A stretch of 64,000 nucleotides of DNA, taken from Amoeboaphelidium protococcarum X5. Its lineage: Eukaryota; Fungi; Aphelidiomycota. The notes beneath the pieces were generated by a model that saw only the letters and a list, made by a program, of their open reading frames with translations, did not search any database and had not been told where the DNA came from. The stretch's first letter is position 1. Each line of letters starts with the position of its first letter. The stretch spans positions 295,345 through 359,344 of the forward strand of contig JALDTO010000266.1 in NCBI GenBank assembly GCA_023515725.1, read 5' to 3'. The translations under genes and the position numbers were made by a program. Below, piece by piece: positions 91 to 42,900 of this stretch.

Positions 91-1323
91 ATGCCAACGG
101 AGTCTTAATAGTAGCAGTAATAATAAGCGGCTACTGTGCTTTTGGTAACTGCGTCGTATGATAGAACTATCAGATTCTGGGAAGCTCTTTCTGGTATTTG
201 TTCGCGCACGGTTTAGCATCCAGACAGCCAGGTGAATAGAGTAGCTATTAGTACGGATAAGAAGTATGTGGCTGCAGCTGGTAATCCGAACGTAAGAATA
301 TATGAAGGTCTCACCAATAATGGAAATCCCATCGCTACTTTTGAAGGTCACACCGCTAATGTTACCGCTGTCTAGTTTTAATCTAATGCAAAGTGGATTG
401 TAAGTGGTGGTGAAGATGGCTTCGTTAAAGTATTTGATATGAGAATAGGGAATGCTGGTAATAACTCACAGCAATAATAATCTGGCGGTAAAAGCGCAGC
501 TTAAAGAGAATATTCTCATGATAAAGTTGGAGTAGCTGATGTTGTTATTCATCCGAATCAGGTTGAATTGATCAGTTGTGATCATGGTGGAGCGATCAGA
601 GTATGGGATCTACGTGCTGGGCTTAATTCATCTTTTAATAATTATAGCAATAGCAACTCTGGAAATCTTAGCGGTAGCTTTAATGCTAGTGGAAGCGGTG
701 GTAATACCAGTCAATATGCCAAGAATGCTTGTTCTCATGAACTTATACCAGAAGAGGATGCCATGATGAAGAGCCTGTCCATCGCCTCTGACTCTTCTCT
801 GCTCACCGCCGGTACTCACAAAGGTAACGTGTATATATGGAAGTTGTCCAATTAGTCGAGTATGTTCAAAGCTGAGCAGCAATCGATACATGGCGAGTAG
901 TAATAGCAAAAGCTCTCGGGTACCCATACTGATTTCTTGCCAGTGTGCAAATTGAAAGCTCACAGCAATTACATGTTGAGGAGCGTGTTGAGTCCGGACG
1001 TTAAACATCTCGCCACAGCGTCTGCTGATTCTACTATCAAGATATGGTCGTTGCAATCTGGAGAAAATTATGATCCTAGTGAGTCTAATAATTCTAATAC
1101 TGGCAAGGGAGAAGGTATCAGCTTAAAGTTGGAAAAGACTCTTACTGGACATCAGCGATGGGTGTGGGACTGTGCGTTCTCTGCCGATTCAGAGTATCTG
1201 GTCAGTGCAGCATCTGATCATACGGCGAGACTCTGGGATTTAAGTAGCGGTGAAAGTATACGCTAATATCAAGGCCACCATAAAGCTGCTGTATGTGTAT
1301 CTCTCAACGACTACTCTATGTGA
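91..1323 (+). CDS. LST8: TOR complex subunit LST8 (WD40 protein), 410 aa
   Basis: With TAR=Gln there is one frame from ATG 91 to TGA 1321-1323: [50 protein letters not shown]...[31 protein letters not shown]...[18 protein letters not shown]. These are LST8 signatures. Confidence 0.96.
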
Positions 1324-1445
1324 TTTAAAAACTGTAAAATTCTATTTTGGCTGAATGAAATAACTAATTAATACCACTTTAGACCAAATTTATTCGAAAA
1401 AGACACATTAACTAATCAGACGGGATACAATACAAGATGGGGGAT

Positions 1446-4386
<2,941 letters not shown>

Positions 4387-4871
4387 GATACTTGAGAATT
4401 GCCAGTTAAATGCAATCTGAGAATTCAAAGAGTCAAATAAATGAGTGGTTAATGGAATAGTAAAAGTTCAAATAATACAAAACAGAACAATATCAAACTT
4501 GGAATCTAAAGCGATTGGTTGATATTCAAAGGAAGAAAGACGAAAGAAACGACTGAACGGACGGCGAAACCAAATTCCGCTCTTTCCGTTTCAAGCCTGA
4601 GAAATAACATTGTCGTCGATCAACTGCGATGAATAACATTGATCTGTCTCTCTATCTCTCTCTTTCTTTCTCTCGGTAAGGCTCAAACTAAGTAAAACTC
4701 CGACTAACTAAGCCACTGTGAAACACTGAACGTTTCAAACTTGACCTGTAACGTATACCAATAGTCGTCTGTTTGGTTCAGTCACAAGAAATTATTAAAT
4801 CACGATGCAACGATACAATGATGAGAAACTGTTAACACAAAAATATTTCATAGTCAGATTTACAATGCAAA

Positions 4872-5747
4872 TCATTCTTTAGATCCACTTTTAATACGAT
4901 TATCCCAGTCGATGCTTTGATTACCTTCTACGTACGCGCTCAACTCAAAGAACTCTGGTCCACCGACAAGACAAATTTCATTGCCATCCGCGTCGAGTAG
5001 AATTAAGACGGTCACTGTGGCTTTGCCTTCAGTCTCCAACTTGACCAAGTCAGTGTGAATCTTATGTCTCTTCTAAATGACGCGCTACTTGAACACCTTC
5101 TCAATGCTCTCGGTGGGTGTCACACTAATAGCCAATCGTCCGCCAGATTTATGGTGTTCAATTCTACTTTCACACTTTCTAATCAGCAGATAATGATCGC
5201 CACTCTAATTCTAATTCTTTGCTAATGGATATTAGAACTTGGTCAAATCATCATCACTGCTGACCACATTCATTTGCAGAATATCGCGGTAATAACTCAC
5301 ATTCTACTCATAGTTGTATGAATTCAAACAAACTCCAACAATCTCGGGATCTTTATCCACTTCCACCAACTTGAAAGTATAACCATCATTACTTGATACG
5401 TAATGCGTTCCATCATCCTCATTATGCTTGATTTCAACGCCATGCGATCTACATCTTTCAATTAGACCTCTACCGTGAATCTCGATCCATGCCAAATCAT
5501 TTCCCTTTTCATACTATGTTATACCATAATTGAATGCCAGTTCTAGAACAAAATCAGAGTCTTCATGTCCGTATCCCACCATAGTCTTGGACCAAGGACG
5601 CGCAAATGGACCATTGCATTACGCGGCACACTCAGACTTGAATTCTTCATGTCTCAGCACCTTCATACCCAGAACATTCACATACAGATCAATGTCCTTC
5701 TTTAGATTTCCGCTTCTTAATACCCAATGCAGCAATTGCATTTACAT
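4872..5747 (-). CDS. GLOD4: Glyoxalase domain-containing protein 4, 291 aa
   Basis: [51 protein letters not shown]...GRLAI...[18 protein letters not shown] matches the GLOD4 family. The frame runs from ATG 5747 to TGA 4874-4872. Confidence 0.92.
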
Positions 5748-5919
5748 TTTGAAAGTTGTTTTATTATTATTATTTTTTGTGGTAGTTGTTCGTGTATGGT
5801 TTGAATAAGATGATGATTGCTCGAAGATTGGGGATATTACGTCAGCGGATAAAAGTGCCGTGATAAAGATGATACAGTAGTAAATAATCAAAAGTAGAAG
5901 CCTGACAATGTATTGATAT

Positions 5920-8569
5920 TCATAGTAACGCTTAGTCAATCTTCTCCTTGTAGAGAATATACATCGTGGTAAAAGTCTCCATCAGCTGCTCCAAAGGCGA
6001 TTTCACTCCCATCTTACCATTCTTTGTATTGTCACCCTGAACAGTAGTACTATGATGATCTAGAATCGCAGAGTGACCAGAACTATCATTGAGCCACGTG
6101 TATAAACGATATTCTTCAGATGCGACCAAATTACACAATTCCAGACATTTCTCCAGATTATGGGGCATAACATTAATGGTCAACTTGTACAATTGACATA
6201 GACTGTCCACAACAATGGGAATGTACATTCTACGCAAAGTGTCAAGTTCCTCCTATCGCTTAAAATTCTCTTCGTCGCCATCAATATTTCCGGTAGAATG
6301 TACAACACCATCAACGCCAGTAAGCCATGCCTCTTCCTAATTCTAAATGAGACAGCGAAGACACGCAGTCTCAGCCCTGACAGTCAACTGCTCAGCATTC
6401 ATATCATCAGACCAAGAGATTATGTTCAACTTTAGCATCTACAAAGCAGCACCAACATTTTGATTCCATTACTAATTCACTGATAACGCTTAGATTAGCT
6501 CCAAGTAACACACCAACTCTTATTGATGGATGCGTGCTTTATCAGCGTGATTTCTATCCAACTATTGCATATACTCAAGAGACGCAAAGGTGGGTAGAAC
6601 TTCCTTCACTTTATTGATAAGACCATTTGCGGCATTAACATCGCCATTCATAAAAAAGTATCTCAGCAATTGATTTACTCTTAATAAGGCATCGAAATCC
6701 ATAGAGTCATCCGCAAACATCCACAATACGGCATCAATCATTTTCAGATCTAAATCATCCACAGCTTAGTCGATGCCTTTGATAATCTTTTAGATGAACA
6801 ATTTCTTGTTCTCAAATGCTGATGCAAATGCAAATCTACATGCAGCCTTGGCATCGAGGCCGTATAAGACCATGTATTAGAACATTTCCAACTTCTCTTT
6901 ATGTGGCATTTTAACCAAAGACAATAACATCCTACCAGCATACTAAGTCTACTCGACAAATCCAACTTTAGATATATAATCCAGTACAAGATCAACCTTG
7001 TTGTATCCGAGCAATTGCTCCACGTAAAGTCCAATCACCAACTATGATAACTCTGCGGTGCACAACTTCAAATTAGGTAACTGTTCAGCAATAGTCCAAT
7101 GCACAGTAACTCTGAGCACTTGCAAGAATTATCTCTTATCACAGGTCGGAGATCGGTGCAATTGCATAACATATTCCAAGGCAACCGATAAATTATTCTC
7201 AACCAAAGATTGAAATAGGAGAGAAAAAGGTGCATCGCGAGATTATGGATACAACTATCGTAATACTCCAACCATATCTGTAAGCGATATGACGTGAACA
7301 CTTTGTCCAACCAGGCCATGACTTTGTGATAAGAATTGCTCAGTAACAGCCACCAGAGACGCCTAGATCATGCACCATAGAGCATCTTACCAATTCTAAC
7401 AAGCCGGAAGCATATTATCCAAATCACCACAAAGAGATGCATATATAGCACGAACATAAACATCATGATGCGAGGATGAAGCAATTTGCTGACAGACGTC
7501 TAGAAATTACTTTCTATTAGCATTTCCACCAGGATAAAGATCCTCCTACATAGCAGTATCTACGTCAGTTACTTGCTATTCTATTCCATTATAGAGCGCG
7601 CCATTAAGAGACGCACATAGCCAATACAACTTTTACTCCCTGCAAAAGGCTATTGCATCCAAAAATCTACCACCTCTAATCATATTCCATATGTTCTGCA
7701 TAGATTATTATGGCGTTATATTCTGAGCATTACCATTAGATTGATATTAATTCCCAAACCCTTCATCCATGAGCAATGAACCAGTCTAAGATTAAAATGG
7801 CTATTACTGTTATTACTATTACTACTACTGCAAATCAAACTTGTAAGTACGCTCCAACCACTCCTTAACTATAACCTTTTCCATAACTGAATTATTGTTA
7901 TTATAAAACTAGTGTACCAGAGAGCGATCAGATGATCCAATATATTAACCTTCCATCGTAACATTAGCATCATATTACTTGTTAGGCTAGTCTTATTATT
8001 ACATCTGACGAACTAGTAGCAAGTCGTGCAACAAGGACCAAAACTACTTCTCCTAAATGTACCCAGCATCCTACTCCTACTCTCCATCACCAGATTCAGG
8101 ATTATAAGTGGACAGCAAGTGATAAAACTAGGCAAGCAAAGACTTCTGATCCCCACTTGATAACTCTTCACCACCATCCATATCAACAGCGAGACGATCA
8201 TCCTCAAGAACCAAAGAACATGATTCCAGGCAATCAGAAAACTGCTCCATCAGACGCATCTCACTCTCCACCTCAAATTGCTCTTCATCAATCACCTCCT
8301 GCGTCAAGTCGAACGCATTACTCTTTGCCACAGTACTATACTTAAGAGAACTAGAACGGTATGGTGTATGAGTATTGCGAAACTTTCTCTACGCCGGAGT
8401 AGCCAAAGCCTTCTTCAATGCAGACTATGACGTTCCTACTACATCATTCCAGAAAGAGAGATAATAACAATTAAATGAAAAGTTTGATAGTAATAATAAA
8501 CACCGTACCATTCTTTATATTCCTAGCCTTCTAAGCAGGTCTATGTGCAGCAGGTGTAGGAAATTCCAT
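5920..8569 (-). CDS. NUP107: Nuclear pore Y-complex protein Nup107/Nup84; intron 8439-8508 (alternative NAGNAG acceptor at 8436)
   Basis: Nup84/107 motifs VKEWLE, WNMIRGGRFLDAIAFCREQKLYWLCASLNG, RAIYASLCGDLDNMLPACQNWQDALW, and C-terminal LRRMYIP...LVASEEYRLY. The first exon is inferred from a frame-compatible GTACGG donor. Confidence 0.88.
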
Positions 8570-33443: not shown

Positions 33444-36400
33444 ATGTCAGATTAGAGGACTTTATAGCGAAATACTGCGAATAAGAATATTAAGGATGAT
33501 CCGACTCTGAACAGATAGGCGGTACTGTCTAAACGTGTTGATTATCCTTAGTTGACAGCGTAAACTTTTAATAATAATTATTTCTAGACTGGAGTAGGCT
33601 CATAGTTGGCATCAGATACTTCTACTAGAAATGCTGATTCATTCAAGTTTGGCTACGATATTGATACCATGGCTAGAGTGCTGAACAGAGAAGATGTTTA
33701 GAGCAAGTAGTAATAATCATCATCGAGAGAAGTGAATGGAGTTGTATCGCCGTTATAATCTATGTAGAGAGACAATTATTATGGCAAGTCTGGTGGTACT
33801 CCGGCTACCACTGGTAGAATATTGTCTTCGAAAAAGTCAGGCAATGCTTATAACGTGCAATCATCGTAAAATGAGCCTGACGATATTCAACTGCCATCCA
33901 CTACCGGACGGATACCGAAGCAGTATGACCAGTCTTTGGATCCCTCGCTAATGAACAAAATAGCAGCTACTTTGAATAGAGTTAATCTCGTAGTATAGTA
34001 GACATCCAACTAGGCAAAATCGGTATAGATGGGGAAAGTGCAGAAGATTTAGATGGAGTAATTTGGAAGTTAACGTCAGCTTCAAGCTGCTGGATTATCC
34101 TCTATGAATGCTGATTAGACGATAAGGTAACAGCAATAGAATACTGAAATTGGTACTCACATTCCAACTAAAAGCTCTCACAATACTCATACTAAATATC
34201 CACCTAGCGCGAATGTGTAATTTGGTGTCGAGGATTTGAAGAGAACTGCGGGATAGAGAGTGCACGTTCCAATGGCTGATAATCTGGATTTCCCTGTTAC
34301 TGTGGCTGCATCATCTGGCGCAGTGTAGAATGTATTGGATGGTGTATCTGCCGGCTGGGAGTAGGAGGAGTCTGAATTATAGGCGGTGGCTTCCAGTTTT
34401 GAATTGCAAAGTGTCCGACATTAATAGATCAACTCCAACATAAACGGTCAATCTGTGGACCAGTAGATTCCATCTTATTACAATCCACCTAGTTAGCTTG
34501 TGGGTGAGAAAGGCAAAGCAAAGAAGCCCAGTAGATAAGTATTGTCTACAAAGGAAGTTAATATTCTCGTTCTATACACTGCCAGAATTGGTGACTTGGT
34601 ATCACTGCGAAGCTTGACTGCTCCAGTGAAGGTTGATGTCAATACGACAGATGATGAAGGTCGGACGCCGTTAATATTTGCAATTCTTGGTGGTCACTAG
34701 GAGTGTGTGTAGATGCTCATAGAGCGCGGCGCTCTCATTCATCAGGCAGATTTTACTGGTCGTACAGCTCTGCACTGGGCGTCATATCATGGCGAGTCGC
34801 AGATTGTACATATGCTGCTCAAAGCTGGTGGAGATCCAACGATGATCGACAATCAGGGCCGTTCATGTCTTCACTTGTCAATGTTCCCATCAGATCCTGA
34901 TGTGTCGCAGATTTTATTAAAGCGTAGTTTTGTGATGGAGAGTCTGAATCAGTAGGAAGATCTCGGTCTTACCAGTGCAATGTTAGCTGCCTAGAATTCA
35001 TCTTTTCATCAACTTCAGGCGCTTATATCTCGTGGTGCCAATCTACAGCTTAAAGATAAACATGGTAAGACTGTCTTGCATCACTGTGCGGAGAATAAAG
35101 TTACTCATGGCGTGAAGCAGGTGCTGGCCGTGGCTCCAGAGCTGTTGAATAACAAGGACAATTATGGTCGCACCTGTCTACACCTGGCGTGTCTGGATGG
35201 TAATATCGCGATCGTCTATTATCTGCTGACCATAGACCAAGGCATAATAAACGAGAAGGATGATTCTGATCGAACTCCTCTTCACTGTGCCGCCATATCT
35301 GGTAAACCATCAGTCCTTAAACTTCTCACTGAATTCGGAGCCAAATTAAACAAAGGAGATAAACATTTAGCCACCGCGCTGCATTATGCCTGCTCTTAAA
35401 ATCTGGTGGACTGTGTAAATGTTCTACTCCGAAAAGGTGCATCCACGTCAATCAAGGACGGAGAGGGGCGATAGTGTTTGATATGGGCAGCCATCAGAGG
35501 TCATTTCGATGTCATACGCTTGTTGTGCAGTACAGATCTGGATGTAAACGCTGCAGAAGATCATGGATTGACAGCTTTGCATTTTGCTGCTTACTCCGGT
35601 CACACCGCTTGCTGTATTTAGTTGATCAGGCGGGGAGCTAATGTGAATTGCACCGATTTTAAGAGTCACCCACCTTTATTTAGAGCTGCAGTGGCTGGAC
35701 AGACTGAGACTGTAATTGCATTAATCAGTGAAGGTGCTGACGTTCTAATGACTGATATCGCTGGCAGAACTGCTCTACACTGGTCGTGTTCCTCAGGGCA
35801 CATTGATGTAGTGAATGCCCTGTTGGATTACATGTAAGACATCAATGTGAGAGATGCTTAGGGTGCCACGGGTCTGCATGAAGCTGCATTTCATGGTAAG
35901 AGCGATGTTCTTCTATTGCTGATTAATAACGGTGCTAATGTGGATTGCGTTGATAAGAATGGTGTAACAGCATTGCATTGGGCCTCTGTTAATGGACACT
36001 TGAATTGCTGCAGACTCTTATTGTAGAATGGAGCATTCATCAACTCCATGGTGGAAGATTAGGACCGTGATACTCCATTGGATTACGCGTATCTGAATAA
36101 CAATTACGATGTCGCTCAGTTTCTTATTGACCAAGGTGCTTTATTAGCTGAAGAAATACTCTCTAGAGCTGCTCTTATCATTCAAAAGGCATGGCGATTA
36201 CACAAAGGATATAAGATTAGACATTTGAAGCATCAAGGATTGAGATAGCATGACAATAATGCGGCTGGAACGTAATTTTAAAAAATGCTCAGAGGAGCTG
36301 TAGTATAGAAAAGAATTGTGTCATAGTCTAAAAAGTTATAATCGCAGCAGTCGGCATTCCAAATCTCTTCGACGAAATCCTCAAAGTACAATGATCCTGA

Positions 36401-36509
36401 AATGGCAAAGTAAAAGATTGCCACTCTATCCCGGTAAATAGTAGCATCTCCTCCATCTTCTGATCTGGATGATAACACCAATCTATAACAGTAATAATAA
36501 TAATAATGA
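33444..36509 (+). CDS. Inversin-like ankyrin-repeat protein with IQ motif, 1021 aa
   Basis: A Gln/Ser/Asn-rich N-terminus precedes roughly 15-16 tandem ankyrin repeats from about 34570 (GRTPLIFA, GRTALHWA, GRTCLHLA, RTPLHCAA, GLTALHFAA, GVTALHWA, DTPLDYA), followed directly by AALIIQKAWRLHKGYK (IQ motif). This is the INVS/NPHP2 architecture. Confidence 0.8.
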
Positions 36510-36569
36510 ATGAATAAAAATGTTGATCATTTATAGCTTAACCTTATATTTTAAGCAATCAAATTTTCA

Positions 36570-37111
36570 TCAAAGTACGTTTTAATACATTTACTTTTGA
36601 GTGGCTTCGAAGTCAATACGCTTCTATTTCAAGTTGCGAGCAGCAGATATAATAGACTTGTCTCCTGGCACCAACTACACTCACGTCATAAAGTTAATGG
36701 CATCTTAAAACTTTGCAATTGCGATAGAGAATATCTCAAACATCCTACCTAGAGAGCCTTGTCGAGATAGTGTTATGATTCGTCAAAGTTTCCCAATTTC
36801 ATCGCGACGATACCCAACCGATACAGGGACTTGACATGATTAGGATCAAGCTCTAGGACGAGTTTACAATTGACCTCAGCATCTGACCATTCACCCAACT
36901 TGATATACGTAGCAGCGAGATTAGAACGAATTGAAATGAGAAGAGATCGATCCTGCTCTGAATGGAGATTGAGCTTAGCCAGTGCTTGAATGTAGTGACA
37001 TACAGCATCGTGATAGTTTTACGAATCGAACGCTTTATTCCCACATTTCTTCAGGTCTAATGAATCTAATTTATTATCTTCAAAAACTTTGGTAGATTCG
37101 CTTGACTGCAT
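36570..37111 (-). CDS. Small three-TPR protein (FKBP/Cyp40-type TPR domain), 155 aa; intron 36675-36748
   Basis: LKKCGNKAFDSQNYHDAVCHYIQAL...RSNLAATYIKLGEWSDAEVNCKLVLELDPNHVKSLYRLG...YLDKALQ|LVPGDKSI...QKQMYQNVL, then TGA. Not in the ORF track. Confidence 0.88.
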
Positions 37112-37183
37112 TAGTATTGCGAGTTAGTATTCGCTTGTTTTAATAACCAGGTCAGATGAAAGCAAATCTTAAAGAGAAATAAG

Positions 37184-38095
37184 ATGAAGACGATTTGGTC
37201 CTCATCGCTTCATGTCGTCAATTCTCGAGATATTTCATTCAAACCACTTTCAGTCTAGAGCGCATAGTCTAGTTCATAGTCCATGTGAGTTTTACGCCCT
37301 CAAACTTAGTATTGATAAAGCCAAAGCCAATGAGGACAAGTTCGTCCTCAAACGCTGAAGGTTGATCAAAATGAGGACAAGTTCGTCCTCATCGCTGCTC
37401 CTTGAATGCGCAATCAAGACATATCGCTCAAACTACTCTCTGTCTGCGGTGAATAGTGTAGTTGATAGTCTGTATAATTTTTACGCGATCAAATTCAGTC
37501 TGAGAGACGCTGTATTGAATGAGGGAGGACAACATGTCTGCAAATCGGATCGTGTGTTGATTGTCATAAAGTTGCATTAAGCGATTGGCATGAAGATGGC
37601 AAAGCGCCTCCTAGATTGAAGCAGAGTAGGCGCGACGCGTGTATAAATATTGAAAATCATGAGCGGATAGACTTTATTCGAATGGTTATCTCAAACTTTA
37701 TTAAAGTCCATTGCGTCTTTCTAACATTAATCAACTCGCAGACAGATTGTCCTCATTGCCGCAGTAAATCAGTTTTTGCGCTAGAGCATTCGAACTACTT
37801 TCAATCTATGGCGAATTATGTATTCCATGGTCGCTTCAAGTTTTGCGCCGTCTTACCGAGTTTTGGTGAGGTTAAGTCGAATGAGGACAGGTTCGTCCTC
37901 AAAACGTGTGATCGGATCAACATGAGGACAAGTTCGTCCTCATTGCTGCTTGCTGAATGAATAATCAAAGATCTCGCGCTCCGACTATACTCAATTTGTA
38001 GCGAATAGTCTAGTTCATAGTCCATAGCACTTTTGCGCCGTCAAACGTAGTTTTGGTGAAGCTAAGTAGAATGAGGACACCTTGTCCGCAAACGG
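37184..38095. repeat. Diverged ~190-bp tandem repeat array with paired palindromes (A)TGAGGAC-N6-GTCCTCA(T)
   Basis: Palindromes start at 37330, 37371, 37881 and 37922, with degenerate copies near 37184, 37519, 37738 and 38071. The exact 21-mer atagtctagttcatagtccat occurs at 37264 and 38005, with variants at 37453 and 37815. The period is 187-190 bp and two cassettes are offset by 551 bp. Confidence 0.9.
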
Positions 38096-38247
38096 TCAGT
38101 ATTTAGATCAGCAAATGTTTGCGACGAGTCTGAACTACCAAACTCGACATTGTTTAAACATGTTGAGTTCAAAGTACAAATATAAAAACATTTCAATGTT
38201 ATAACTTAAAGTTTAATTTAATAGTGGATCACATAATAAACAAGCTT

Positions 38248-41200
38248 TCAAGCACGCCGCACATTTCTGTTCATGCTGGCTAAGGCAACACGTCTCAATT
38301 ATTCAGCATCTCGCGCTTACTTTGACGACTAGGCCTAAGATTACTGGGATGATGACTATAGGCTCTGTGAGTGACTAGGCCCAGTTCTCGGCCCTGCGGA
38401 TGAAGTTGCAGGCCCCCGCGTATCTTGACGCCCACGATAGTCTCCAGAATAGCGTCGCTAGTTGGCATAATCGTCGCGATAGTCACCTGCTCTCCCTCTA
38501 CCACCACCACTTTGATCATCGTATCTGGATGAGCGTTGAGATTCCCTTGAAGCTGTCAAAGGTTGCTAATGGTGCGAGCGCGAGGATGAATCGAGCCTTG
38601 ACGCTGAGCTTCGTTATTCATAACCACGTTATGCCTAATGGTAGCGCTAATGTTCATCTTTAGATCGTTATGAACGGCTATAATATTCTCCACGCCCATA
38701 ACTACCAGAGTGAACCGATGTATATTATTGCTCAGGCAGCCGTCTTCTTTTGCCATCATCGTATGATTTAGAGTCCTCCACATGCACTCTCTTCTAACGA
38801 TTATCATCAGCTTTTAGGCTTCTACTACGTTCACTGGTACTACTAGCTCCACGGTATGGCGATTTCTCTCTAGAAATGCTACTACTACTACTACTACTCG
38901 CACTAGCTTAAGGAGTTGACTCTTTACGAGCGGTTTACCTCAGAGAAGCCGTAACTGAGTGAGGTTGCTCGGGCGTAGGACTAACATTCCATCCGGAGCG
39001 TCCGGTATCGAGTTTTAACGACATATCAGGCCGCAATTAAGATGGCGATCTAGAACGACTTTTCATCGAAGGAGACTTGACTGAGAAGGGTGCTTGACTT
39101 TACCCATCTTGTATCTCAACTTCTTAAGTTTCCTTAGCGCTTTTATCGTCAGCAATTGCTCCATCTTCAACGTCATTATTCGCATTATTCGTTAATTCCT
39201 CTTAAAGCATAGGCTCTTCAGAATCTTAAGATTCGCTAACTCCTTATTGACCCCACCCGGACACGTCAGTTGTATCCATCATTATAGACGCTTCATCTCT
39301 CATCTCATTGAGTACCGTCACATTGCCTTCTTCATACTCGCCCTCTTCAAAATCTATAGCTTCTTCTTAAGGATCATTTACAATATCAGTCACCTATATA
39401 TTCTCCAATTCCATTTATTAAGTCTAAGAAGACTCTTGGGATTGTTGATCCTCATAAAACTGTCGAGATTGATCTTCTCCTAATACCATAGAACTTTCAA
39501 CTTCTTCATTTTCAATTTTACTATCATCTTCATCGATATCCTCCTCAATATCGCTACGAGATCCAACAGAACCAGATGAAATCGACAAACTCATAGAAGA
39601 TCCGTCTAGATATAAAGCCACCTGACGTTTGTCAACTTCCACCTTGATCCATTACTATTTATTGCGACCCAGCACGGCAAGGTATCTAGTCAGTAGAACT
39701 TTCAAGTCATCACGATTCTCTGCAGCTAACGCCCGGCTGACTCTCTACTCCAGATTACTACCAATGAGCTAAAATAGAGGGTAGACATCTTTCATCTTAT
39801 CCAGCATGATGATACAATTCCGGATGCTGGTGTAACAAGTAGACTCAAGACTGGCCACGACAGCCAATCTGACACGCTTGAAGAATGTCTGTACAACGTA
39901 CTAAAAGTCCTGATACTTTAATGAAGTCTCTTCATCAGGCAATTGGCGATTCAGTTCAGCATCAGAGCTCCATTTCTATTTAAATCCGTGATGAAACTGA
40001 GCCTGCCCTTTGTACTTATCTTCGTCTTAATACCAGGTGGCCAACTTTGACAGAATATCGTTCAAGAATATACCCATATTAGCAGCCTCCATCTAGGAAC
40101 ATGAAAAGAAGCATATCTGTAAATCATGCACAATTTTGTCAACAACAGTCAGGTGAGAGAATAGAGGAGCATCTACGTAGAGCAATAGCCAGAAGAATCT
40201 TGCCGCAAACAGAGCATCCAATGGCGACAGAAGAGCTCTTGAGCGAAAACAGTAATGGTATGCCTAGGTGCCTATATCATTCCTATTATCCAAATGAATA
40301 AACAATTGAGTGGCGACTGCTTTCAAGTTTTACACCACATTGCGTACCTCAGATTAACGATTATATAACTCGCTTTGCAACGAATCAGCAATACCAAGTT
40401 TACCAGGCTCATTCTGATATTTACCAATCTGCTCTGCATACAACTCTGCGCAGTCATTAATCATACCAAGATCTAAAGACCAGAACAGTCTGTAGAACAA
40501 TTCATTACAAAGAGGCAACTACTCACAACGACTACTACAAATCACATCTGGAAGAGCCTGCAACTGCAAGACCAAACTACTTGAATAGCTACTACCTGCA
40601 TCAGCAGTCAACACATTGCGAAGTTGCTTTGACAAGGTACCACGATATACGTGCCAAATATCAGCATCCTGTACATTGAGCTCCAAAAGTCTATCTATAG
40701 ATGGCACAATATTCAGTAATTCACCATCCTCTACAATATTACACGTCAAAAAGTGCACCAAAAACAACAATGTAAGCTGCGTCTGATCATGTACAGAACT
40801 AATTAGCTTGACGTGCTTGTTATTACCATTTATGTCAAAGGATGGAATAGTTTTCACCACCAGAATACATTCAAGCAGGGAAGCGGCCAGATTCTATTTA
40901 GTCAACGCAGCGAGTAAGCGATCAGCGGCGATAGCTATTCTCCTAGGACTTATTTCTGATTGTAATTGCAAAAGTTGTGACTTCAACATGGGGCCACAAC
41001 TCATAGCCTCAAGTTACTGCATACTACCATTTTCTAATAGAATCGCATCCCCCACTACCAGAGACAGAATGTCCTTGAGGATTACCAAATCCACCACCTA
41101 GTCAGCAATCATCTACTTCAATACATACTACAGCAGACCAGTGAAATCAACATCGCACTTAATAATGAGATTACTAGTCAATGATGATAAAGAGCTGAGC

Positions 41201-42900
41201 CAACTTGACACGTTCATACCGTCATCTTTAATTCTGGATCCACCACTAGCGAGTTTGGAAACTATACAGTACATTAGAGTATCATAAGTCAAACTGGTCA
41301 TATAAGCAAACGAGTCAACCATTGGCTATATCATGTTCTCATACACCTGTAATTGGTCGAGAACGACATCAAATACTAGCAGTGGATTACAACTGCTTAG
41401 TTTCGCCAACTACCTCCCAAATTACCTCACATTGTCTTTACTTATTCTCCTCATAATCTTCTTGGTCTCTTGCACCACATCATCTTTCACGGCGGATAGT
41501 TTAGGTGACGCGTCGTACTTGGCCATCCAGTCACCGTACAGAGTGTATCTGACACTATATGACATTTCGCAGAATATATTCCATATTTCACTGCTAGTAA
41601 CACCAGGAGAGTCTTCATTCACACATAGTCCAGGTAAGAGACATTCTGATATGACGCGGAGCCAAAGTTTCCTATTACCAACGACAGAGTCTTTCATTCC
41701 AACAGCAGCCAGTTTGGAAAGCATTTGACATAATACTGAATTACAGCCAATAGATTCCTTCAAAATATTAAGTAATGGGAACACTTGTTTAATCAAAGTA
41801 TCCATATCTTACACTATCATTAAAGGTTATTAGCTAGCGGACTACTTGTTGAGGGAATTTACACCAACTAGGCGCGGCAACACACAACACGATTGATAGA
41901 GTGGACGGATAACGTTTACCAAGCAATAGCAGAACTCTTTCACCACGGCGGGAGAATATCGAACCAGATCTGGAAACTCATTCAAGATTATCAAAGCCGA
42001 TTATATATCACCAACTTTAAACAACTGAATACACAATCGAAACTTCGTCAACTCACTCCTCTGATCAATGTCATTATTATTATCCGTAGTAGCGGAATCA
42101 TCTGCACTGAATTCAAAGTCATCTTTTACTGGCGACAGATAACCGTAAAAATCTTCCATACTCATCAATCTGCCTTTAATAAGATATGCAGCCACAGCGA
42201 GAGTCAATTCGCCACCACCTTCGTGTCTGAGTTTAAACGCCATATGTGTACTCAGAGCTCTACTAAAAGATTCCAGTTCCGATCTATTGCTCCAATGACT
42301 AATAAGAGATATATACAGCTCATTCTACTGCAGATTATTGCCAAATGCATCCAACACTAGACTTAGCGTTCTATTCGGATCTAGGTTGAACTGACCAATT
42401 AAAGTCTCAATCTAAGGGAAGATATTGTTGTGCTCCGCAGCAACTTTACCAGAAAGAGTTTATACACTAGCATTCTCGACATCAACATTATATCGACTAA
42501 GAAGAGTTAGTAATTTCGAGTATCCTTCAGACTCTTCACACAACAAGTTGAACTTCTCCTACTTGTAGAAGAGACGCGTGCTGATCTTCACCGCCTTCCT
42601 GTGAAAAGCCTTGGCATCCACCAGATTCAGGTCCGCCAGTAAATCACCATCCAACTGTTATAGTAGCAGCTGTATGTCAACAAGCTTCTGCTCAAGTAAA
42701 TGATTAATCAAAGTGATTACATTCTATCGACCGCGATCAATGTCATATTAGATTTACGCCATGTGGAGCAACAATAGTAGGTCATCTTGTGGTAAGTCGC
42801 GATAATTCACCTCATCAACATTAAATTAATCAGAATTCAGTTTACTTATCCAACTTTGAATTAAGATTTGCTTGTCATCTTGAGCATTTAAATGTTCCAT
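38248..42900 (-). CDS. THO2: THO complex subunit 2, 1550 aa
   Basis: TRLFYKQEKFNLLCEESEGYSKL, LIGQFNLDPNRTLSLVLDAF, RYTLYGDW, TKKIMRRISKDNVRQFGRQLAKLSSCNP, RIKDDGMNVSSWL, YTSIRNCIIMLDKM, then a long acidic and RS/RG-rich tail to TGA 38250-38248. Confidence 0.93.

Follow-up and report, generated by a model that had tools for sequence, protein, structure and literature searches.

The palindrome-bearing array that separates the THO2 gene from a TPR-like gene in Amoeboaphelidium protococcarum X5 belongs, as an ordinary member, to a family of old, dispersed repeats with a relationship to the rDNA intergenic spacer. In the 64,000-nucleotide stretch that we analyzed (positions 295,345 to 359,344 of contig JALDTO010000266.1, the whole of which is called the window here), a sequence-only reading had singled out this array as the best candidate for an undescribed system. 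The locus is not unique, as the family occupies ~28 places in the genome, including the rDNA spacer. The explanation that we favor, with moderate confidence, is that the ~187-bp repeats, also present in the rDNA spacer, make up an old family, dispersed in low copy number, whose palindromes would have been kept by putative protein binding.

In the window sequence, perfect 20-bp palindromes TGAGGAC-N6-GTCCTCA start at positions 37331, 37372, 37882, and 37923, and a further copy with one mismatch starts at 37185. These five matches at up to two mismatches compare with 0.13 expected by chance, and none of 100 shuffled windows contained as many. The four perfect palindromes form two pairs, both with a start-to-start spacing of 41 bp, and are contained in four ~187-bp units in direct orientation, which are 60–74% alike. 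A repeat finder recovered direct-repeat spacings of 187, 189, 190, 362, and 551 bp, the first three being the unit periods of 187–190 bp reported previously. Tandem Repeats Finder, run on the window, gave no array output because of the low similarity between units. The two pairs of palindromes and the degenerate copies located one unit outward (the four outer sites given below) had thus been correctly described. The array has the following components:

37183–37369, + strand: unit 1, a-type, cassette 1 (nhmmer unit model, E 2.7e-51; unit alignment), with a decayed outer-left site (37185–37204) at its start, and palindrome P1 and a 21-bp linker at its end.
37331–37391, no strand: double palindrome of cassette 1, with P1 (37331–37350) and P2 (37372–37391), both TGAGGAC-AAGTTC-GTCCTCA.
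37370–37560, + strand: unit 2, b-type, cassette 1 (nhmmer unit model; unit alignment), with P2 at its start, and a decayed outer-right site (37520–37542) and linker at its end.
37735–37920, + strand: unit 3, a-type, cassette 2 (inverted-repeat find; nhmmer unit model; unit alignment), with an outer-left variant site (37738–37757, GCAGACAGATTGTCCTCATT) at its start and P1' at its end.
37882–37942, no strand: double palindrome of cassette 2, with P1' (37882–37901, loop AGGTTC) and P2' (37923–37942, loop AAGTTC).
37921–38111, + strand: unit 4, b-type, cassette 2 (inverted-repeat find; nhmmer unit model; unit alignment), with an outer-right variant site (38070–38089, AATGAGGACACCTTGTCCGC) and linker at its end.

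The box ATAGTCTAGTTCATAGTCC, which had been described as conserved in each unit, is exact in units 1 and 4 only, with three mismatches in unit 2 and about seven in unit 3.

The two unit types were defined from an alignment of 24–26 units. The "a" units start with a variant site (consensus TGCGGACAG-ATT-GTCCTCA) and finish with the perfect palindrome, and the "b" units start with the perfect palindrome and finish with the mirror variant (TGAGGACA-CCTT-GTCCGCA) followed by a linker of ~21 bp. A cassette is an a+b dimer of ~370 bp, in which the inner a|b junction forms the 61-bp double palindrome. The outer sites of one cassette are inverted repeats of 20 nt that are 80% complementary, and the same variant is found at other loci. 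At the loci with four units (the window and C205), variant sites alone are found at the b|a junction. The palindromes have a 7-6-7 layout (8-6-8 with the flanking A/T), with a spacer that is asymmetric and not palindromic, and in two copies the loop of P2 is flipped (CAACTC versus GAGTTG, and AAACTC versus GAGTTT).

The two cassettes of the window share only 68% identity. Higher values were obtained with copies from elsewhere, namely 90.5% between cassette 1 and the C135 copy and 88% between cassette 2 and a C205 copy, which led us to reject a local tandem duplication as their source. The linker separating the two cassettes is the insertion site of a second element, belonging to a family that we called family B:

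37562–37726, + strand: family B MITE, 165 bp, unrelated to the array (13 aligned copies; absent from the C114 sister locus).

The inverted ends of this element in the window are TGTCATAAAG... and ...CTTTCTAACA (the right-end family consensus is ...CTTTATAACA), and it is flanked by a 5-bp target duplication, TTGAT (37557–37561) and TTAAT (37727–37731). The 13 copies that were aligned with their flanks have sharp ends, inverted termini, and mostly a 5-bp target duplication. BLAST returned ~15 family B matches in the genome, with 76–91% identity, and other copies are found, for example, at L023:1501-1664, L025:1501-1682, and L027:1501-1668. From its TG...CA ends and 5-bp duplication, family B might also be a Ginger-type element or a very short solo LTR. 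At the corresponding site, the sister locus on C114 has an uninterrupted GTTGAT|CAAC and no MITE, and this copy of family B therefore inserted after the divergence of the two genome copies described below. The 551-bp higher-order structure of the sequence-only reading does exist as a spacing, but it is the product of this unrelated insertion between the cassettes.

In A. protococcarum TAA and TAG code for glutamine, and with TGA as the sole stop the genes next to the array are long open frames:

36570–37111, - strand: TPR-like gene (translation with TAA/TAG = Gln; TPR-like repeats judged by eye).
38251–42000, - strand: 3' part of the THO2 gene (open frame with TGA as the only stop; Pfam THOC2_N, E 2.8e-18, at 41422–41805).

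The earlier assignment of the flanking genes is confirmed by Pfam for THO2, whereas that of the TPR gene is by eye, since a Pfam search with one submitted piece of the TPR-like protein gave no match. The THO2 open frame ends (~38251) at ~140 bp from the right edge of the array, and the ATG of the TPR-like gene, at 37111, is 74 bp from the first array site. The array thus occupies the upstream region of the TPR-like gene, in the spacer between the start of this gene and the THO2 3' end. At C205 and C249:854k, as in the window, the array follows the stop of a long gene at a distance of 70–140 bp and is upstream of the gene that comes next, and its orientation relative to the neighboring long gene differs among the three loci. 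A tblastx comparison among all loci (TAA/TAG = Gln) revealed no shared neighboring gene, with similarity solely inside the repeat. Two other features were observed in these surroundings. A near-perfect hairpin is present at 38141–38169, ~80 bp past the THO2 stop, and its palindrome is not kept in the C114 sister locus. Next to the C249:854k array is an orphan open frame of 113 aa (L021:2345-2683, C249:~854.7k); this frame and the array are both missing from the sister locus C264:138.7k, and no relatives of the frame were found near other repeat copies.

Using a unit model built from sequence only to search the whole genome, we found 58 units of ~187 bp, distributed over ~28 places and at least 18 contigs. 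Several contigs have more than one copy, with three places each on C264 and C249. BLAST of positions 37150–38130 gave cassette copies at ~20 loci, which are 69–91% identical. Each locus comprises one to five head-to-tail units (0.2–0.9 kb), and there are no long satellite-type arrays. According to the sequence-only reading, one cluster of TGAGGAC-N6-GTCCTCA per chromosome would support a centromere, and many dispersed copies with target-site duplications would support a MITE. A pattern search of the whole genome (23.6 Mb) retrieved 16 perfect palindromes, every one within copies of the family; they are indeed dispersed, but show neither the one-cluster-per-chromosome pattern nor target-site duplications. 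Pairs 41 bp apart are present at C135:143.6k, C205:597.05k, C205:597.42k, C249:786.4k, C249:854.0k, and the window locus. This spacing is found at all intact loci, which number only five genome-wide, two of them 68 kb apart on C249. In the 1.5–3 kb next to the copies, we found no recombinase, binding protein, or partner gene at any locus, and genome-wide searches with palindrome and outer-site patterns for a larger or autonomous element with the same ends gave short copies and chance-level matches only. The double palindrome was absent from metagenome and viral contigs, where a looser palindrome pattern matched 41 contigs, none of them with similarity to the unit.

Five copies, >99% identical over 1.4–2.6 kb, correspond to the rDNA intergenic spacer beside the 28S, 5S, and 18S genes. 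Two rDNA loci carry the units as follows:

L050 (C162:1-10000): 28S at 1–2438; 5S at 2661–2780; units at 3125–3269 and 5854–6414.
L047 (C233:161000-170999): 18S at 3412–5203; units at 7642–8177.

The order on C162 is 28S, 5S, a partial unit 345 bp further on, and then three units ~3.4 kb downstream of 28S, and on C233 the units are located 2.4–3.0 kb upstream of 18S. In total the spacer has four units at two places. In the rDNA-spacer copies the palindromes have decayed, showing 1 and 3 mismatches in the stem, and thus any function of these sites does not hold at the spacer copies. The locus at C264:2.226 Mb shares with the rDNA an extra ~0.5 kb of non-repeat spacer flank (82% identity), whereas the other loci share the units only. 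At least this copy would have moved as a spacer fragment, or in the reverse direction.

Some further observations concern the rDNA itself. In L050, the 5S rRNA gene is in the intergenic spacer, ~220 bp after 28S and on the opposite strand. Spacer pieces that are >99% identical are also found on large non-rDNA contigs, in the interior or at an end (L048, C146:857000-866999, and L049, C211:291000-300999), where they stop 45 bp into a b-type unit and give way to another common 4-kb sequence that is 97–99% identical. In L047, a 1544-bp tandem duplication (762–3850, 99.9% identical) repeats the 5.8S gene and 3' fragments of 18S, and is either an assembly artifact or a variant rDNA unit.

For many loci, a second, collinear copy that includes the genes is found on another contig, with ~84–93% identity, and with 80–93% in the six pairs compared below. 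Such pairs look like two diverged copies of the genome, derived from a hybrid or an old duplication. The window region 36000–39372 is paired with L022 (C114:35468-38768), with ~87% identity on both flanks; other paired loci are L018 and L038, L039 and L040, L003 and L035, and L021 and L059. The arrays compare as follows:

Window (four units); sister C114: three units; part of the interior is deleted and the palindromes are decayed.
C135 (dimer); sister C179: monomer, a-type at the left end and b-type at the right end.
C249:786k (dimer); sister C200: a/b-hybrid monomer like that of C179.
C205; sister C211: a 33-bp end remnant only.
C154:578k (remnant); sister C264:2.299M: likewise a remnant.
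C249:854k; sister C264:138.7k: array missing, with ~150 unrelated bp in place of 1.37 kb and no clean empty site.

An array or its remnant is thus present in five of the six sister loci, and therefore most of the arrays compared are older than the split of the genome copies. The comparisons show that the arrays change through unequal crossover, by which dimers become monomers, and through exchange between copies. In an informative-site analysis, the copies are mosaics of one another, with breakpoints in the unit arms and near P1 or P2. Recombination precisely at the palindromes was considered and rejected, as the breakpoints are scattered along the unit.

The conservation of the double palindrome was evaluated in seven intact cassettes from five loci. 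No variation was seen in any of the 28 stem columns, compared with 33% invariant columns outside the stems, where the mean pairwise identity is 66%. The loops are 79% identical, the linker 63% (falling to 38–43% between some pairs of cassettes), and the outer sites 44–80%. The arms of the palindromes are therefore better conserved than their surroundings, as had been noticed from the window. The chance of 28 invariant stem columns out of 28 at the 33% background rate is ~3e-14, which overstates the constraint because the set of cassettes was partly chosen for intactness; the outer sites of the same cassettes provide an internal control that is independent of this choice. In the decayed copies, changes in one arm are never compensated in the other, and thus the constraint acts on the sequence, beyond pairing, which favors a protein site over a hairpin. 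Conversion alone is also a poor explanation for invariant palindromes around a linker with 63% identity.

Nevertheless, since the copies are mosaics, exchange rather than selection could account for part of this uniformity. In addition, 7 of the 28 stem positions are lost in the C114 sister, for a flank divergence of ~13%. Here the palindromes are less well kept than the flanks, in the direction that the sequence-only reading had given for a neutral local duplication, whereas those at the paralogous loci are perfect, which makes the outcome a mixed one. The previous proposal of selected sites for a dimeric protein is thus supported by the invariant stems and the 41-bp spacing, but not by the C114 palindromes, which decayed faster than their flanks. 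Overall, the data suggest that the central palindrome pair is under constraint, most likely through a dimeric DNA-binding protein, which is a reasonable reading given that both the constraint and the 41-bp spacing are kept at the intact loci.

In the mechanism that we propose, the dispersing entity would be the a+b dimer of ~370 bp, with the decayed variant TGCGGAC-N5-GTCCTCA at its left end, the mirror image at its right end, and two perfect 7-6-7 palindromes, 41 bp apart, at its center. In the window, two dimers of different subfamilies adjoin, and were later separated by the unrelated MITE. Purifying selection may hold the central double palindrome at five loci, where two dimers of a sequence-specific DNA-binding protein could be placed on the same face of the helix. 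The candidate binder would be either a host factor or a lost recombinase of the family itself, and the possible routes of spread include rDNA-spacer fragments, small circles, or a MITE-like transposon. A more specific version of this explanation, which we put forward tentatively, is that the 61-bp site belongs to a putative specific binder with fewer than ten intact targets, that it arose in a repeat present also in the rDNA spacer, and that selection maintains it in exactly one locus of each duplicated pair.

The family could instead be the relic of a non-autonomous MITE-like transposon, a dimer with TIRs of ~20 bp in which the palindromes are transposase or recombinase sites and no host selection acts at present. 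We regard this as rather unlikely. Like MITEs, the family is short, non-coding, and dispersed, with copies scattered through gene-dense DNA on at least 18 contigs, and has inverted terminal sites, namely the 20-nt, 80% complementary outer sites of the cassette; a true MITE, family B, is present in the same spacer. Cassettes of different subfamilies abut at the window and at C205, suggesting insertion beside an existing copy, and the 7-6-7 layout with its asymmetric spacer is similar to that of recombinase core sites, which have inverted arms around a short asymmetric spacer. However, the flanks of 13 arrays display no target-site duplication or sharp common boundary, and homology fades into linker or unit remnants. 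There is also no clean empty site in the six sister-locus comparisons, and no larger element with these ends, such as an autonomous partner, anywhere in the genome. Unlike in MITEs, the best-conserved sites are internal, and perfect inner sites with decayed outer ones are the opposite of what transposition competence requires. Moreover, the window copy predates the split of the genome copies and its sites are still perfect. The inverted outer ends agree with the transposon option raised by the sequence-only reading. A Helitron end was rejected by eye, as the outer right ends AAACGGTCAG lack CTRR and identical hairpins are found on both sides. Helitrons have a 3' hairpin followed by CTRR, a 5' TC, and insert at A/T; a CTGA is present 5 nt past the hairpin at the inner junction.

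A second alternative, which we consider unlikely, is that the copies are neutral debris of rDNA-spacer subrepeats, dispersed as pieces or small circles, with palindromes conserved via exchange and self-correction of hairpins. The 240-bp spacer repeats of Drosophila are an example of subrepeats of this kind. In tomato, repeats derived from the rDNA spacer are documented at other chromosomal loci (PMC2679016), and these spacer subrepeats and dispersed satellites resemble the present family in the nucleosome-size tandem units in the spacer, the short arrays elsewhere, and the unequal crossover. The four units at two places of the spacer, the dispersed locus that also has a non-repeat spacer flank, the mosaic copies with unit numbers altered by unequal crossover, and the flipped P2 loops are all in line with such an origin. 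As to the latter, small inversions driven by hairpins flip loops. Against this alternative, the 63% identity of the linker (38–43% in some pairs) would demand conversion tracts confined to each 20-bp palindrome, and self-correction preserves the complementarity of the arms, not one and the same sequence at five loci. In addition, the spacer copies, the supposed source, have the worst palindromes. The family differs from rDNA-spacer satellites also in having only 1–5 units, in gene-dense DNA, and in that the non-rDNA copies keep the double palindrome that the spacer has lost.

The palindromes were also compared with sites of recombinases and origin-binding proteins. The core sites of tyrosine recombinases are organized as 13-8-13 in loxP and FRT and as 11-6-11 in dif, and the EBNA1 sites in oriP are paired palindromic sites of an origin-binding protein. 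The double palindrome resembles these in its inverted arms, its short asymmetric spacer of fixed length (6 bp), and the pairing at helical-phase spacing. In contrast to them, it has no linked recombinase or origin-binding gene, and the points of exchange are scattered and not confined to the sites. The recombination site suggested previously is thus supported by the architecture of the palindromes, and not by their context.

A gene for a structured non-coding RNA or a small-RNA hairpin, one of the candidates of the sequence-only reading, is very unlikely. The palindromes do fold (DNA z-scores of -4.0 and -3.3), but the whole cassette is barely better than its shuffles (z -2.1), the stems have just 7–8 bp, the arm changes of decayed copies are not compensatory, and an Rfam search (E up to 1) gave no matches. 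Another possibility was that of a centromere, since a ~180-bp repeat with a protein-site-like motif at one junction out of two, and with dimeric periodicity, recalls the CENP-B box, which is present in alternate alpha-satellite monomers; unlike the latter, however, the family has no long arrays, is not distributed as one per chromosome, and has no link to centromeres. Although the 187-bp unit and a 146-bp spacing are nucleosome-sized and the intact sites recur at alternate unit junctions, a short sequence-defined centromere or replication origin is hardly credible, because ~28 places, three each on C264 and C249, with two intact loci 68 kb apart on the latter, exclude a one-per-chromosome centromere and are far too few origins for 23.6 Mb, because the genome has just five intact loci and sister loci without the sites, and because the arrays are only 0.2–0.9 kb long and lie 70–140 bp from gene ends.

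The aphelids form the sister group of fungi, and to our knowledge their repeats are essentially undescribed. The analysis removes a false lead, as the array is neither a centromere nor a unique higher-order array. The ~10%-diverged sister loci can be used as a built-in conservation test for non-coding features of this genome. The repeat family itself constitutes a natural experiment, in which unit arms, linker, loops, and outer sites drift while the 28 stem positions and the 41-bp spacing are fixed at five loci, and these fixed positions provide a short list of candidate protein–DNA contacts. If the tentative proposal of a specific binder is true, the 61-bp site may act as a fork barrier, insulate closely packed genes from one another, or mediate chromosome pairing.
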